IMG/VR virus record: IMGVR_UViG_3300013116_000108
Coordinates: 1-64,000 of that record
Reading direction: 5' to 3' (one strand)
DNA: 64,000 bases
In this document: positions 42,895-54,374 of the stretch, one piece after another
How the letters are laid out: each line of letters begins with the position of its first letter
Position numbering within the stretch: position 1 is the stretch's first letter
The notes under the pieces: model-generated
Told to the model about the DNA's origin: nothing
What the model saw: only the letters and a program-made list of their open reading frames with translations
Databases searched by the model: none
Made by a program: the position numbers and the translations under genes

Positions 42895-43200
42895 CTAGTA
42901 CATTCTCTTTTGAGAAAATCCCCATTGTGCTTCTTGTTCACGTTGTTTCTTTAACCAACGATTACGGCCTGCTTTTTTGGCTAGTCTTTTCTTTTCGCTA
43001 GGTTTTATAAAATACTGCCTATCTCGACATTCTTGTAAAGTATTGTCTGCTTGGAGTTTTTTCTTTAGTTTTCTTAATGCCTTTGTGACATCATTGTTGT
43101 GAACTATAACAGTTGTTCCACCTGTTAAATCTTGAGCTCTTTTAGGTTGATTTCTATTACCAAAGCCTGCTCTGTTATTGCTTTTTCTATTTACAAACAT
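42895..43200 (-). CDS. rpsU: Ribosomal protein bS21
   Basis: V.V.NNDVTKALRKLKKK....E...RQYF.KPSEKKR. Confidence 0.88.
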   Translation of the reverse strand: MFVNRKSNNRAGFGNRNQPKRAQDLTGGTTVIVHNNDVTKALRKLKKKLQADNTLQECRDRQYFIKPSEKKRLAKKAGRNRWLKKQREQEAQWGFSQKRMY

Positions 43201-44363
43201 TAAGCCTCCTGTACGTCTGTGTCATTAATAATTACTTCCTTTCCTTTAAGTTGATCTAACTCGTAATAGTATTCAAGCAAAGTATTTTCTAATATACCTT
43301 TTAATGCTCTAGCACCTACCTTATATTGTAACGCAAGTTCGACTATTTTGTCAAGTGCTTTCTCCGAAAATATCAAACTAACATTATCTAAATCAAAATA
43401 GAACCTAGTTTGCTCAATTAGGTTATTATCAATATCAGCCAATACTTGTTTTAATTCATCTTTGGAAAGTTCTGTTGTTTGAACAACAACTGGAAAGCGA
43501 CCAATAAATTCAGGTATCATTCCAAAGTCAATTAACTCGCTTGAAATTAGTTTACTTTGGCCTCCGTGTGTTTCTCCAAACCCAATAGTATTTGTTTTTT
43601 GGCTGTCCATTCCAACAAATGCTCCACTTCCAATAAACAAAATCTTACTAGTATCTACTTCAATCATTTCTTGCTGTGGATGTTTTCTTCCACCTTGTGG
43701 TGCTACTCTAACAGTTGTACCTTCAACTAATTTTAACAATGCTTGTTGTACACCTTCGCCTGAAACATCTCTAGTAATTGAAACGTTCTCACTTTTCCTG
43801 CCAATTTTATCAATTTCATCTAAAAATACAATACCTTGTTCTGCTCTTGCTACATTGTAATCTACTTTCATTAGCAAAGAACTAATAATACTTTCAACAT
43901 CATCACCAACATACCCACTTTCAGTTAAACTTGTAGCATCAGCAATTACAATAGGCACATCTAAAAACTTAGCAATTTGTTTTGCCATAAAAGTTTTACC
44001 ACTACCAGTAGGACCAATTATTAATTGATTATTCTTTTCAATAGTACCTTTTCTATCATACATTAATCTCTTGTAGTGATTTACTACACCTACTGCCATA
44101 TGACGTTTTGCTTTATGTTGTCCAACTACTGTTTCGTCTAAAAATGCTACAATCTCTTTTGCTGTTTTGGGTTCTAATTCCTTTGCCCATTGCTTTGCCT
44201 TTTCATCTGTGAGGACTTTACTACACAAATCTATACATTCATCACAAATACCAACACCTTCTGCTACAATAATCTTGTATACTTGGTCTTTTGTTTTGCC
44301 ACAAAAATTACACTGACTGACTGAACGAATTTGATCTATACTAGTTGATTTATCATCTGTCAT
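43200..44363 (-). CDS. clpX: ATP-dependent Clp protease ATP-binding subunit ClpX
   Basis: Zinc finger CNFCGK..CDEC, GPTGSGKT, GYVG pore loop, DEIDK, RDVSGEGVQQALLK, RKH loop, IGF loop; start 44363 or 44393. Confidence 0.96.
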   Translation of the reverse strand: MTDDKSTSIDQIRSVSQCNFCGKTKDQVYKIIVAEGVGICDECIDLCSKVLTDEKAKQWAKELEPKTAKEIVAFLDETVVGQHKAKRHMAVGVVNHYKRLMYDRKGTIEKNNQLIIGPTGSGKTFMAKQIAKFLDVPIVIADATSLTESGYVGDDVESIISSLLMKVDYNVARAEQGIVFLDEIDKIGRKSENVSITRDVSGEGVQQALLKLVEGTTVRVAPQGGRKHPQQEMIEVDTSKILFIGSGAFVGMDSQKTNTIGFGETHGGQSKLISSELIDFGMIPEFIGRFPVVVQTTELSKDELKQVLADIDNNLIEQTRFYFDLDNVSLIFSEKALDKIVELALQYKVGARALKGILENTLLEYYYELDQLKGKEVIINDTDVQEA

Positions 44364-44730
44364 TTGAGAGCCTTTTTTGTAATATCCAGTCAACTGGAAC
44401 TGTTAGTTTTCTATTATTTAATGAATCGTAATTCTCTTCATGATGTATATCATCACACCACCAAACGTTTGGCATAGACATCAAGTACCCTGTAACAATT
44501 TTATTTTCATATTCATTGCTTACAATAACTACAGATGATCTAGTTGCTGTATTAACAATCCAATCAACTTTGCTATTTTGTTCGCCTATGTGTAAACTAT
44601 AATCGCCGTATTTAGGTAATTCCTTAATATATTGCTCAACTGTCCAGTTATCACAACCTACAAGGAATACACTTTCTTGTTTACCAAACCAATAATCTGG
44701 TTCTGTTACTACTGTTACATTATTGTCCAA
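44353..44730 (-). CDS. Hypothetical protein
   Basis: Operon-packed. Confidence 0.6.
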   Translation of the reverse strand: MDNNVTVVTEPDYWFGKQESVFLVGCDNWTVEQYIKELPKYGDYSLHIGEQNSKVDWIVNTATRSSVVIVSNEYENKIVTGYLMSMPNVWWCDDIHHEENYDSLNNRKLTVPVDWILQKRLSNDR

Positions 44731-45295
44731 GGACGTCCCTTCTTGTTAAGTAATTTGATACAGCCGTTTTTTCTTCAGCACTCAAGTCGTCAACATCTTG
44801 AGTATTTCTTGCTAACTGATCCACTAAGTGTTTAATGTAATCATTTGTTAAGTATGCTGATGTTCCATCTTTGTCTACATCAATCCACTTATTGCCATTC
44901 CATTTTTTAAGTTCATGTGGGTATACATTTGTTAATGTATGTAGTTGACCTTTTTCTGGATCTGCTGGAAAACTATCACCATACGTTGCTTTAACACCTA
45001 AGTTTTCTTCTTCCTCTTTTATTTTTGTTTTATCAATAAGATCGTATTTTTGACTTATTCTTTCAATAGCCTGATCTCTACTTGCTACTTGAGTTTGTAA
45101 GTCTATAATATCTCTGTTAAGTGAATCAATGCCCGAAGTATCTTTGATAATTACTTCTTTCTCAACTTCAACTTCTTTTATTTCAGGTGGTTTGTTTTCT
45201 AATTCTAACACTTGCGATTGTAGTGCTTGGTTTTCTTTTTCAAGTTTGGCAATAGTACTCGTTGCTTTCCTTGTTAGGTCGTCAACTTCATCCTT
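44720..45295 (-). CDS. -1 frame C-terminal extension of the upstream coiled-coil membrane protein (or separate ORF from GTG 45211)
   Basis: Open -1 frame from the A9 run reads KDEVDDLTRKATSTIAKLEKENQ..., continuing the coiled coil. Confidence 0.65.
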   Translation of the reverse strand, partial: KDEVDDLTRKATSTIAKLEKENQALQSQVLELENKPPEIKEVEVEKEVIIKDTSGIDSLNRDIIDLQTQVASRDQAIERISQKYDLIDKTKIKEEEENLGVKATYGDSFPADPEKGQLHTLTNVYPHELKKWNGNKWIDVDKDGTSAYLTNDYIKHLVDQLARNTQDVDDLSAEEKTAVSNYLTRRDVLGQ

Positions 45296-46908
45296 TTTTT
45301 TTGAAGGCTGGAATACTCCTTCTCTAACTCCGCTTTTTCTTCTGTGAGAGTGTCGTGCTCTTTTTGAAGAGAAGCCAATTCCGCTTTAGTCATTTTACCA
45401 CTTGCTATTGCTCCGTCAAGTTGTTCTTCTAACTTTAGCAGAAGGTCTGTATGCTCTTGTATTTTCATTTCAAGTTCCCTCTCTCTTTTTGATTGCTTTT
45501 TTTTTGATTCTGTTGGTTCTGGTTCTTTAGGCGGATGCCAAGGTTTGTGGCCTTTTTGTTGCCTCGCCCAACTTATAGTTTGAACACCTGCCAGCACCAA
45601 CATAATAGCAAGTGGGTCAAATACTAATACAATAATAATGATAACCCAACGTACAGCACGTTCGAGTAATTCGGTATCTGCTTTTTCACCATAAACAAAT
45701 TCAGCAATGTACTTAATTGGTCCTACTTCTGCTTCTAGTTTTCTATACTCTTTTTGTATATCAAACTTTTCATCAATTAGGGTATCAATCTTATCATTTG
45801 ATTCTTTAATCTTTGCTAACTGTTCATCAATCAAAGCATCAGCAGATTCAGTTGTGCCTTGCCCTAGTTGAGAACGTAATCTTGTAATAACTTCATTAGC
45901 ATTTCTAATTTCTTCTTCTGCTATACCACGTAAACGTTTAATTTCTTCTCTAGCATTGTTTATAATATCATTGTCAACGCCTGTGTTAGACTCTTGTGCT
46001 TCTGCTGTTTCTCTTAAACGTTGCTTTTCTTTATTTGCTTGTACAATAGCATAATTAAATTTTGCTCCATCTTTAATCTCTTTAATTTCTTCTAGTACTT
46101 CTAATCGTCTTGCTGTTAACTCATCTTTAAATTTCTTCAAAGCCGTTCTAGTAGCATAACCAAACTTGCCATCAGCATTAACACCAATTAGTGCTTGTAG
46201 TTCTTTAATCTTATCTTCAGCAGGCCAAGTTTCTAACTTGTTCATCTTCTCGTCTATTACTTCTATTTCGTCTAAGTACGGTTGAATTGTATCTGCTAGT
46301 TTCTGCTCTTCTCTTTCAATAATAGCATTTTGCTCATCAATAGCAGGCTGGATTCTTTCAAATGCTTCGTTGACTCTGCCTAGTTCTTGGTCAATAATTA
46401 ATTGTTGTTGATCAATAGCAGGTTGCTGTCTAGCATAAGCATTATTAATACGTTCTTCTTCTGTTGCTATTTGCTCTTGTATTCTAGCATCTTTATTATC
46501 GTCTTGATTTTCTGCGGCAACAATTTTTTCTTCCGCTCTAGTAATAATAAGTTCAAACCTGTCAATTTCAGATTCAATTCTTACTAACTGTTGTTGGTTT
46601 TCTTCACTTTGTGATGTTTGTTCAATATGTGCTTTAGATAAGAAACCAAAGATACCCATACTCGTAATAAACATAATGATTATTACTGCGGCCGCTAGGT
46701 AAGTTTTCATCCATTTTTTAGAATCAAACCAATATTGATGTAGCCAGACTGTTGTTACAATTTTACCAACTTCTAAAACACCACCCATAATAATTACAGG
46801 AACAACTGCGGCGGCAAAAATAGCCGTTAATCCTATTATTGAGTAGTATGCGGCAACACCTGATATACATAGTGCTACAAATAAAATGAAAAGTCCGAAT
46901 ATCATCAT
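45274..46908 (-). CDS. Multi-TM, long coiled-coil protein (contains short peptidoglycan-binding-like DGKFGYATR motif)
   Basis: Three N-terminal TMs, heptads, EAEVGPIKYIAE, VFDPLA TM, basic tail ending at an A9 run. Confidence 0.8.
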   Translation of the reverse strand: MMIFGLFILFVALCISGVAAYYSIIGLTAIFAAAVVPVIIMGGVLEVGKIVTTVWLHQYWFDSKKWMKTYLAAAVIIIMFITSMGIFGFLSKAHIEQTSQSEENQQQLVRIESEIDRFELIITRAEEKIVAAENQDDNKDARIQEQIATEEERINNAYARQQPAIDQQQLIIDQELGRVNEAFERIQPAIDEQNAIIEREEQKLADTIQPYLDEIEVIDEKMNKLETWPAEDKIKELQALIGVNADGKFGYATRTALKKFKDELTARRLEVLEEIKEIKDGAKFNYAIVQANKEKQRLRETAEAQESNTGVDNDIINNAREEIKRLRGIAEEEIRNANEVITRLRSQLGQGTTESADALIDEQLAKIKESNDKIDTLIDEKFDIQKEYRKLEAEVGPIKYIAEFVYGEKADTELLERAVRWVIIIIVLVFDPLAIMLVLAGVQTISWARQQKGHKPWHPPKEPEPTESKKKQSKRERELEMKIQEHTDLLLKLEEQLDGAIASGKMTKAELASLQKEHDTLTEEKAELEKEYSSLQKKRMKLTT

Positions 46909-53983: not shown

Positions 53984-54037
53984 ATTTTTTTCCTTTACAT
54001 ATATGTAAAGACCCTCGCCACTAGAGGCGAGAGCCCT

Positions 54038-54341
54038 CTTCTAGAAGATTTCTGTTGATAGGCATCTTCCAAACCCCGAGCAACTATGCCGCTAAGGCAA
54101 AGTCCTCATGAAACACATTATCGTTTGCGTTTATACGTTTTGTTCGCGTTAACCGAGCTTACATCCGGGCAACTCCACTCTCCTAATAACTACCTGTCGA
54201 TCCTTTTTCAACCCCATCATAAACACATTCATATAATCACACCAAAATCTGTGTTGTTACTTTTGGAATGTGTTTATGGTGGAGTTGCTGGGTACCGCCC
54301 CCAGGTCCAGATTAGCGTTTGAATAACTTCATCGTTACGAC
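54038..54341 (-). ncRNA. ssrA: Circularly permuted two-piece tmRNA; acceptor piece ends CCA at 54277, coding piece starts at 54215; tag ANDNVFHEDFALAA (54128-54084)
   Basis: ...GGCGGTACCCAGCAACTCCACCA precedes GGGGTTGAAAAAGGATCGAC; acceptor GGGGTTG/CAACTCC with G3:U70; 13-bp inverted repeat bounding the intervening segment; outer ends approximate. Confidence 0.93.
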
Positions 54342-54345
54342 ATTA

Positions 54346-54374
54346 TTTATAACATAAAGTAGAAAAAATGTCAA
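54346..54374 (-). promoter_or_regulatory. Composite sigma70 and late promoter for tmRNA
   Basis: TTGACA-N17-TATAAA whose -10 extends to TATAAATA. Confidence 0.8.

Follow-up and report, generated by a model that had tools for sequence, protein, structure and literature searches.

A conserved run of nine A's joins two reading frames of a membrane-anchored coiled-coil gene in marine giant-phage genomes and probably acts as a recoding site

The analysed window, a stretch of 64,000 nucleotides representing positions 1 to 64,000 of the IMG/VR record IMGVR_UViG_3300013116_000108, contains on its minus strand a gene for a membrane-anchored coiled-coil protein, located between a DnaB-like helicase gene and a ClpX-like ATPase gene, with a primase also among the neighbours. 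The coding sequence is divided over two reading frames which meet at a run of nine A's (Table 1). In the frame of the upstream ORF the run reads C-AA AAA AAA A-GG, so that the heptamer A_AAA_AAA is in phase and followed by AGG, whereas the -1 frame reads K-DEVDDLTRKATSTIAKLEKENQ... and continues as coiled coil. The predicted products are therefore a short form of 544 aa and a long form of 729 aa (538 residues + 191). An earlier note, based on the sequence alone, had proposed a candidate programmed -1 frameshift or transcriptional slippage at this place, and each of its statements on the sequence was confirmed.

Table 1. Features of the two-frame gene and its immediate surroundings (coordinates of the window)
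Feature	Coordinates	Strand	Description
Zero-frame ORF (short form)	45274..46908	-	544 aa; three N-terminal membrane helices, a long coiled coil with a weak peptidoglycan-binding-like motif, a fourth membrane helix, then a basic coiled-coil tail
Fourth membrane helix	45571..45660	-	Residues about 417-446, motif VFDPLA
Second A9 tract	45497..45505	-	In frame (TCA AAA AAA AAG); a slip here would truncate the protein after 8-9 codons; A9 only in the closest relatives, A8 or shorter in the others
SD-like AAGGAG	45316..45321	-	14 nt upstream of the heptamer
Invariant block	45292..45306	-	CTTCAAAAAAAAAGG; longest invariant nucleotide run in a 2.2-kb alignment of 10 distinct genes whose synonymous sites are saturated
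A9 tract, the proposed recoding site	45294..45302	-	Contains the in-phase heptamer A_AAA_AAA (45301..45295)
-1-frame continuation	44720..45295	-	191 codons plus stop (44722..44720); a coiled coil followed by a C-terminal domain
Zero-frame stop	45274..45276	-	TAA, 6 codons after the tract
First ATG/GTG/TTG of the -1 ORF	45211	-	GTG, 28 codons after the run
C-terminal domain	44723..45013	-	About 95 aa, four strands plus two helices; phage-specific
Conserved downstream gene	44353..44730	-	125 aa; TTG start inside the invariant CTTGGACAATAA, overlapping the end of the -1 ORF

Such an arrangement is far beyond chance. The window holds only two A9/T9 runs, both in this gene, against 8.9 expected from shuffled sequences, and of the five runs found in the whole 204-kb record only this one joins two long ORFs. 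The tract was also recovered independently, since a DNA contig from another sample spans 44914-45412 at depth 44 without any difference and no indels were reported in two DNA runs. All 17 distinct relatives retrieved from IMG/VR and independent metagenomes, at 55-94% amino acid identity, have CTTC-A9-GG, and the 16 whose downstream sequence is normal have the C-terminal ORF in -1, with a zero-frame stop (TAA or TAG) at the same place. A pattern scan of IMG/VR allowing A7-A11 between these flanks returned only the three known relatives, all with A9, plus chance matches. No close DNA relative was found among deposited phages, in which the C-terminal piece has no tblastn hit either.

Several lines of evidence indicate that the -1 frame is translated from the tract onward. 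Its dN/dS is 0.09-0.20 with dS above 1, and the changes located just after the tract are synonymous or conservative in -1 but non-synonymous in frame 0. No relative has a start codon upstream of the tract in the -1 ORF; the relatives L004 and L005 have none anywhere in their 196-200 codons, and the partial relative L039 has none in the 94 codons present. The N-terminal ORF in 21 clusters is 453-558 aa long, mostly 543-549 and never about 730, and the C-terminal ORF in 33 clusters is always called separately at 163-181 aa. Conversely, more distant homologues carry both parts in one ORF, among them the representatives P0180 (738 aa), P0165 (710), P0163 (727), P0124 (648), P0125 (624) and about 60 others, and 31 of 152 family genes are fused in frame, making the long form a natural architecture. 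The nearest outgroups, P0030 and P0069, have no C-terminal domain downstream, although the gene of P0030 ends in its own A9 with a 92-codon -1 ORF. P0123, considered as a possible free-standing tail protein, is a fragment at a contig end.

The distribution of A-runs over the family points to the length of the tract rather than to its phase. In the 152 family genes, coding-strand runs number 51 for A7, 15 for A8, 44 for A9 and 3 for A10, whereas the flanks (939 kb) hold 298, 54, 6 and 0, respectively (Fisher p = 4e-14 for all genes and 4e-10 for representatives of 70% clusters). All 47 A9/A10 tracts lie after the fourth membrane helix, in codon phases 1, 2 and 3 (11, 19 and 17, respectively). 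Among ORFs running at least 50 codons past the stop, 19 of 51 in the -1 frame had an A9 in the overlap, against 0 of 20 in the +1 frame (p = 7e-4). L082, a family gene in frame, has A8, while its close relative L080, which needs -1, has A9. The recoded state requires at least 11 changes on a FastTree tree.

The core of the earlier interpretation, a programmed net -1 change of frame giving a short and a long form of the protein, is thus strongly supported by the comparative evidence. By contrast, the SD-like AAGGAG, which the note had likened to the internal SD of dnaX, is not conserved, the relatives having AAGAAG, AAGGAA, ATGGAG or AGAAGA at that place. No conserved downstream structure was found either, the RNAalifold consensus being -3.3 kcal/mol with no covariation term and the z-score -0.08. 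The anatomy of the site is therefore not that of a dnaX-type stimulated ribosomal shift. An upstream nascent-RNA hairpin (GAAGG/CCTTC) abutting the tract was also considered, but the stems are weak (-0.7 to -5.2 kcal/mol), slide out of register between relatives and do not exceed background windows of the same genes, in an analysis where the pairing constraint was not fully enforced.

The pile-up of tracts at length 9 in any codon phase and one A10 contig from an RNA library tip the balance towards slippage of the RNA polymerase, which the note had given as the alternative and which we favour, although only somewhat more likely than not. In this reading, the polymerase, presumably that of the host, would slip while copying the T9 template and add a non-templated A to a fraction of the transcripts. 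Unslipped A9 mRNA would give the short form, A10 mRNA, and A13 mRNA if it arises, would put the downstream 191 codons in frame, and A8 or A11 mRNA would also end within a few codons; ribosomal -1 slippage of Lys-tRNAs on the in-phase heptamer probably adds to the long form. Runs of 9 A or T give efficient slippage by bacterial RNA polymerase, as used in Thermus dnaX, and A_AAA_AAA is much less shifty than A_AAA_AAG in E. coli (PMC5009743). Nine nucleotides is also the length at which selection against runs appears in many genomes, and conserved 9A in conserved overlapping ORFs was the criterion retained for functional slippage (PMC1088944); the conservation of the tract, the single-ORF homologues and the scarcity of 9-nt runs in the window and in the flanks of the family genes all fit these criteria. 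In addition, an 82-nt contig of the metatranscriptome run X17 matches 45354..45294 and then continues with an extra A before GGATGAAATT..., and so carries A10. This single contig, at word depth 2.3, comes from a related strain whose own DNA is not known, and it could reflect a reverse-transcription, PCR or sequencing stutter, DNA in the library, or a rare A10 strain. Moreover, one study reports that E. coli RNA polymerase slips less readily on A runs than on T runs (PMC6260861). No phage RNA polymerase was found in the 204 kb of the record, which is however only 56% complete, and the T7-type search had no positive control.

Programmed -1 ribosomal frameshifting as the main route, with two Lys-tRNAs slipping back on A_AAA_AAA, possibly helped by a pause at the following AGG codon, and with transcripts essentially all A9, is less likely but remains possible. 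Any A9 contains an in-phase A_AAA_AAA, so that ribosomal shifting is never excluded, and the direction is always -1. In the clade of the window, A9 could also be explained by the heptamer plus conserved Q and K residues, and the SD-like AAGGAG is present in the window. Furthermore, three relatives (L081, L085 and L138) join the frames at CCA AAA AAG, which has only six A's, on which RNA polymerase should not slip efficiently, and which is the classical ribosomal heptamer, so the family appears to use ribosomal shifting in places. On the other hand, besides the lack of conserved stimulators and the weakness of A_AAA_AAA in E. coli, ribosomal shifting does not explain why tracts pile up at exactly 9 in all three phases when 7 in-phase A's or A6G would suffice, nor does it explain the truncation-type A9 tracts, and an A10 contig is present in an RNA library.

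Two separate genes, the downstream ORF being initiated on its own at the GTG at 45211, at a non-canonical codon, or by termination-reinitiation after the zero-frame TAA, are very unlikely. Gene callers do annotate a separate ORF in all relatives and a GTG exists at codon 28 in the window and in several relatives, but no SD-like sequence was seen by eye before this GTG, the 28 codons preceding it are conserved as protein, some relatives have no start codon in the -1 ORF, homologues have both parts in one ORF, and the invariant A9 is left unexplained. Finally, a homopolymer assembly error (true A10) or a decaying gene is effectively refuted by the A9 shared by all 17 distinct assemblies from different studies with dS above 1 between them, by the contig at depth 44, by the purifying selection on both halves and by the tract being the most conserved nucleotide block of the gene, even though homopolymers are error-prone and the relative L041 (3.9x coverage) shows A8 at the other tract and a broken frame.

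Among known systems, the site is close to Thermus thermophilus dnaX, where tau and gamma arise by transcriptional slippage on a 9-nt A/T run: both have a nine-nucleotide A tract in the coding strand without flanking stimulators, and two forms sharing the N-terminal part and differing in the C-terminal part. The polarity is reversed in the window, where standard decoding gives the short form and the slip, which has not been shown experimentally here, would give the long one, in a phage membrane protein and not a replicase subunit. The family nevertheless also contains truncation-type tracts working exactly like dnaX, the long ORF being in frame and a slip giving the short form. Escherichia coli dnaX shares the in-phase Lys-Lys heptamer, the -1 direction and, in the window, an SD-like element at a similar distance, but its heptamer is A_AAA_AAG, it has a stem-loop, and its shift truncates the protein rather than extending it. 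As L081, L085 and L138 use A_AAA_AAG itself, related genes thus appear to use the ribosomal or the transcriptional route, as described for dnaX. The IS-element transposase genes and mapW described by Baranov et al. 2005 (PMC1088944) present conserved 9A in the overlap of two conserved ORFs, a fusion product by +1 nt in the mRNA and single-ORF homologues, and slippage in Shigella mxiE (9-T run) also affects the next gene downstream, as may happen here through the overlapping TTG start; they belong to a different gene family and biology, and here the tract recurs many times within one protein family. The -1 frameshift of phage tail assembly chaperones (G/GT) also yields a short and a C-terminally extended form in a fixed ratio, but the present gene is not in a tail module, its site is a homopolymer rather than of the G_GGA_AAG type, and its product is an integral membrane protein.

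Searches for a function of either part were negative. The N-terminal part gave only sub-threshold hits to tetraspanin, tape-measure and peptidoglycan-binding models, the latter seen only in relatives, and the ESM Atlas returned unnamed viral clusters. The C-terminal domain, which many distant homologues carry in frame, has no Pfam family and no PDB fold match, and searches of AFDB, BFVD and Atlas gave family members plus partial matches, with TM below 0.5, to small beta motifs of tail-fibre proteins. Prediction of a complex between this domain and the downstream 125-aa protein gave no answer, neither for nor against. From hydrophobicity and charge, the coiled coil between helices 3 and 4 is inferred to be periplasmic and the tail after helix 4 cytoplasmic. 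The two forms would then share the membrane and periplasmic part and differ in whether the cytoplasmic tail carries about 190 extra residues ending in a small phage-specific domain. The overlap of the -1 ORF with the start of the downstream gene, also seen in relatives, makes translational coupling of this gene to the long form possible.

A broader reading, which remains speculative, is that the A9 tract would be a recurrently evolved isoform switch of a whole family of marine large-phage membrane scaffold proteins. Lineages would repeatedly gain or lose a 9-A tract in the cytoplasmic tail, which either extends or truncates this tail in a fraction of molecules, and a mixed population of short and long anchors would be the selected trait. 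In the clade of the window, where the long form's ORF would also be translationally coupled to the next conserved gene, upstream of a ClpX-like ATPase, polymerase stuttering would then set the dose of a small membrane-tethered module.

Conserved recoding in phages is documented almost only for tail assembly chaperones, and our literature searches found no report of this gene family or of recoding in it. Gene callers split the gene or mislabel its halves as two hypothetical proteins, and about 30 clusters of the 163-aa “ORF” exist in public data. The finding marks an abundant, uncharacterised envelope-spanning phage protein whose two forms invite functional study. Moreover, related genes appear to use an A9 tract, an A_AAA_AAG heptamer or a plain in-frame fusion, which makes the family a natural system for asking when evolution chooses polymerase slippage over ribosomal frameshifting, and what run length the polymerase of a marine host tolerates.

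An ATG-initiated ORF of 544 aa was found on the minus strand, near the end of which the text reads CTT CAA AAA AAA AGG ATG AAG TTG ACG ACC TAA and thus includes a run of nine A's (A9). The -1 frame is open from 83 nt upstream of this tract and, starting at the last two A's, reads K-DEVDDLTRKATSTIAKLEKENQ... for 191 codons, its first ATG/GTG/TTG being a GTG located 28 codons after the tract. The coordinates, frames and product sizes of the earlier note, which had proposed two forms of 544 and about 729 aa, are all correct (538 + 191 = 729 aa). The window holds only two runs of nine A/T, both in this gene, when dinucleotide shuffles give 8.9, and the whole 204,100-bp record has five such runs and none longer, among which only this one lies at the junction of two long ORFs. 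Another coding A9 (GTT CAA AAA AAA AGA), located just outside the window in a 388-codon ORF, has the same TTC-A9-AG context, but both other frames close within 12-16 nt, so that a slip would truncate that protein.

Coordinates of the features, in the window unless a locus is named (L-numbers designate loci of relatives)
Feature	Coordinates	Strand
Zero-frame ORF	46908 to 45274	minus
A9 tract at the junction	45302..45294	minus
Zero-frame stop	45276..45274	minus
First ATG/GTG/TTG of the -1 ORF (GTG)	45211	minus
Stop of the -1 ORF	44722..44720	minus
SD-like AAGGAG	45321..45316	minus
Second A9 tract	45505..45497	minus
Downstream conserved gene	44730..44353	minus
ClpX-like ATPase gene	43200-44393	
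Permuted tmRNA gene	53993-54369	minus
A9 in a 388-codon ORF, just outside the window	G000:C1:65766-65774	minus
A8 at the upstream tract of L041	L041:2341-2348	
Shortened region in L043	L043:1661-1730	
Homologues of the downstream conserved gene	L056:4432-4830, L059:3072-3464, L062:571-945	
Translation and proteostasis genes in relatives	L053:5729-6602, L056:4785-6348, L062:1034-2175	
L080, compared with the L082 tail	L080:4272-4280	
-1 junction region of L060	L060:380-700	

The window is the first 64 kb of an IMG/VR viral record (34.7% G+C, 56% complete according to CheckV), for which no close DNA relative exists among deposited phages. A primase gene and a DnaB-like helicase gene lie upstream of the gene, the helicase being about 50% identical to those of jumbo phages PA5oct, Atu_ph07 and XaC1, and a conserved 125-aa gene and a ClpX-like AAA+ ATPase gene with a zinc finger lie downstream. 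In relatives, translation and proteostasis genes (IF3, ribosomal protein S21, HSP20, ClpS and ClpX-like) are likewise encoded next to this gene. The record also carries two tRNAs and a permuted (two-piece) tmRNA reported by ARAGORN, with the tag peptide ANDNVFHEDFALAA. Pelagibacter phage Mosig, which has a short homologue of the membrane protein, also carries ssrA, and this may hint at an alphaproteobacterial host. A 194-kb contig that carries a member of the window clade (L050, MDTB01062307.1) is deposited as part of a Flavobacteriaceae MAG (TMED171), and is probably a phage contig binned with a bacterium, or a hint about the host. The protein has hydrophobic segments at about residues 3-23, 25-47, 68-90 and 417-446, with a 330-residue coiled coil between the third and fourth segments and a strongly basic stretch after the fourth. 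By the positive-inside rule, the long coil is inferred to be periplasmic and the tail that carries the tract to be cytoplasmic, which fits sub-threshold peptidoglycan-binding hits and source annotations in relatives.

The tract was retrieved in an independent DNA assembly and in relatives. Logan's contigs of another sample (run X2) include a 499-nt contig at depth 44 covering 44914-45412 with no difference and no gap, and no insertion or deletion was reported in two DNA runs. Three IMG/VR and fifteen metagenome loci encode proteins 55-94% identical to the 544-aa ORF and give 17 distinct junction sequences. All 17 have CTTC-A9-GG, and the 16 whose downstream sequence is normal also have a zero-frame stop six codons later (tail QKKR.K...) and the C-terminal ORF in the -1 frame. 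The low-coverage contig L043 (2.3x) keeps CTTC-A9-GGACGAA but then lacks almost the whole -1 ORF, its zero-frame tail ending ...LLGQ like the normal C-terminus, and it may be a deletion variant or a chimeric assembly. None of the relatives has a start codon in the -1 ORF upstream of the tract, L004 and L005 have no ATG/GTG/TTG anywhere in their 196-200 codons, and the partial L039 has none in the 94 codons present. Protein searches agree, since the 21 nearest clusters of the N-terminal ORF are 453-558 aa, mostly 543-549 and never about 730, and the 33 clusters of the C-terminal ORF are always called as separate 163-181-aa genes.

The -1 ORF evolves under purifying selection, with dN/dS of 0.09-0.20 for dS of 1-2, and most comparisons of the 28 codons that precede any candidate start give 0.11-0.39. 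Directly after the tract, substitutions are synonymous or conservative in -1 (GAT/GAC, CTA/TTA, GTT/ATT), whereas in frame 0 they change the residue (M/T, T/S). The selected frame therefore switches at the tract. Moreover, the block CTTCAAAAAAAAAGG (15 nt) is the longest invariant nucleotide run in a 2.2-kb alignment of ten distinct genes in which only 44% of columns are invariant.

A profile of the C-terminal piece, searched against 1.84 billion representative proteins, found 514 hits and revealed that its last roughly 90 residues form a widespread phage domain. About 60 of the best 150 hits also match the N-terminal membrane/coil part in the same polypeptide, for example the representative proteins P0180 (738 aa), P0163 (727), P0165 (710), P0124 (648) and P0125 (624), so that the long form is a natural architecture. 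The model of the domain has four strands and two helices (pLDDT 82) and no Pfam or PDB match, and structure libraries return only family members and weak partial matches.

Diverse family members were then fetched with a family alignment and with a DNA pattern for the conserved VGPIKYIA motif, giving 152 distinct complete genes. Of these, 31 carry the C-terminal domain in frame, 96 lack it, 22 have a -1 ORF of at least 50 codons joined at an A9 (21) or an A10 tract (1), and three (L081, L085 and L138) are joined at CCA AAA AAG, the classical A_AAA_AAG heptamer with only six A's. The junction tracts occur in all three codon phases: C-AA AAA AAA A-GG in the window clade and L066, xxA AAA AAA AAG in L053, L059, L060, L080, L134, L209, L219, L222 and L259, and AAA AAA AAA in L096, with A10 in L095. 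In the distant relative L060, where the junction reads CTA AAA AAA AAG, the -1 ORF runs only about 57 codons and the C-terminal domain is a separate gene with its own ATG, after a 61-aa ORF. In a first census of 124 genes, 19 of 51 -1 ORFs extending at least 50 codons beyond the stop had an A9 in the overlap, while none of 20 such +1 ORFs had any A-run (p = 7e-4).

On the coding strand inside these genes the run-length counts are A6 223, A7 51, A8 15, A9 44 and A10 3, whereas in the 939 kb of flanking DNA they fall monotonically (1155, 298, 54, 6 and 0; Fisher p = 4e-14, or 4e-10 with one representative per 70% cluster). All 47 A9/A10 tracts lie 35-266 residues after the FDPL motif of the fourth membrane helix. 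Some extend the protein and others would truncate it, as in Thermus dnaX. This is the case of the second tract of the window, which is in frame (TCA AAA AAA AAG, including A_AAA_AAG) and where both other frames stop within 8-9 codons, so that a slip would give a form of about 475 aa ending just after the fourth membrane helix. This second tract is A9 only in the closest relatives (L037, L038), A8 in L003 and L004, and absent in L005. In L041, a relative 92% identical to the window (contig coverage 3.9x), A8 at this place breaks the frame, and is either a homopolymer assembly error or a natural length variant. On a FastTree tree the recoded state needs at least 11 changes, and recoded genes are sisters of in-frame fused ones (L134/L115, L059/L118+L126, L081+L085/L086, L219/L210+L207; local support 98-99). 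Among close relatives with N-terminal branch lengths of about 0.1, L082 is a single 531-aa ORF with TCT AAA AAA AAG (A8), while L080 has CCA AAA AAA AAG (A9) and a 2-nt difference just downstream, and needs -1 to read the same tail.

Nothing around the tract looks like a ribosomal stimulator: there is no conserved structure downstream, the upstream GAAGG/CCTTC stem is weak and not above background, and the SD-like hexamer varies among relatives. What is conserved is a homopolymer of exactly nine, in any phase. Nine is the length at which bacterial RNA polymerase slips efficiently, Thermus dnaX using such a run (PMC5009743), and at which selection against runs becomes visible in many genomes, conserved 9A in conserved overlapping ORFs having been the criterion for functional slippage (PMC1088944). 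Furthermore, A_AAA_AAA is much less shift-prone than A_AAA_AAG in E. coli (PMC5009743). The RNA evidence is weak and consists of an 82-nt contig of metatranscriptome X17 that aligns to 45354..45294 with two mismatches, then continues with 21 letters that begin with one more A, followed by GGATGAAATTAGCGAGTTAA, the downstream sequence of relatives such as L005 and L037. That contig therefore has A10, but its word depth is 2.3, it derives from an assembly rather than reads and from a related strain whose DNA is unknown, and its end, exactly 20 nt after A10, is where a variant path would rejoin if k=31 is assumed. Against a DNA origin, none of the DNA assemblies examined has A10 at this site.

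We consider it very likely that this is a real recoding site giving two forms, and polymerase slippage is favoured, with moderate confidence, as the main mechanism. A mainly ribosomal shift remains possible, although less likely. Every A9 contains an in-phase heptamer, the A6G sites show that ribosomal shifting exists in the family, E. coli polymerase is reported to prefer T runs over A runs (PMC6260861), and neither the host nor the polymerase is known, all of which speak against slippage as the sole mechanism. Assembly error, pseudogene and two separate genes are excluded or made very unlikely by the independent DNA assembly and by the conservation and selection described for the tract and the -1 ORF.

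The site would work like Thermus dnaX, the 9A IS elements and mxiE, which rely on slippage, and in part like E. coli dnaX through its heptamer. It fulfils the comparative criteria for a functional slippage site, lacks two defining features of a stimulated dnaX-type frameshift and is not a tail-chaperone frameshift. This kind of mechanism is already known, whereas no report of the gene family, of the phage context or of the repeated evolution of 9-A tracts within one protein tail was found in the limited literature consulted.

The protein is inferred to be a membrane-spanning scaffold whose cytoplasmic tail comes in a short version and in a long version tipped by a small domain. A conserved gene of about 101-132 aa (N-terminal motif M..N[IV]T.VT.PD) always follows the membrane-protein gene, and a complex prediction between the domain and the protein encoded by this gene in the window gave no answer. 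In the window, this next gene starts at a TTG inside the invariant CTTGGACAATAA, which is read in two frames, and overlaps the end of the -1 ORF, and in relatives the homologous gene overlaps the end of the domain-bearing ORF in the same way. Its translation may therefore be coupled to the long form.
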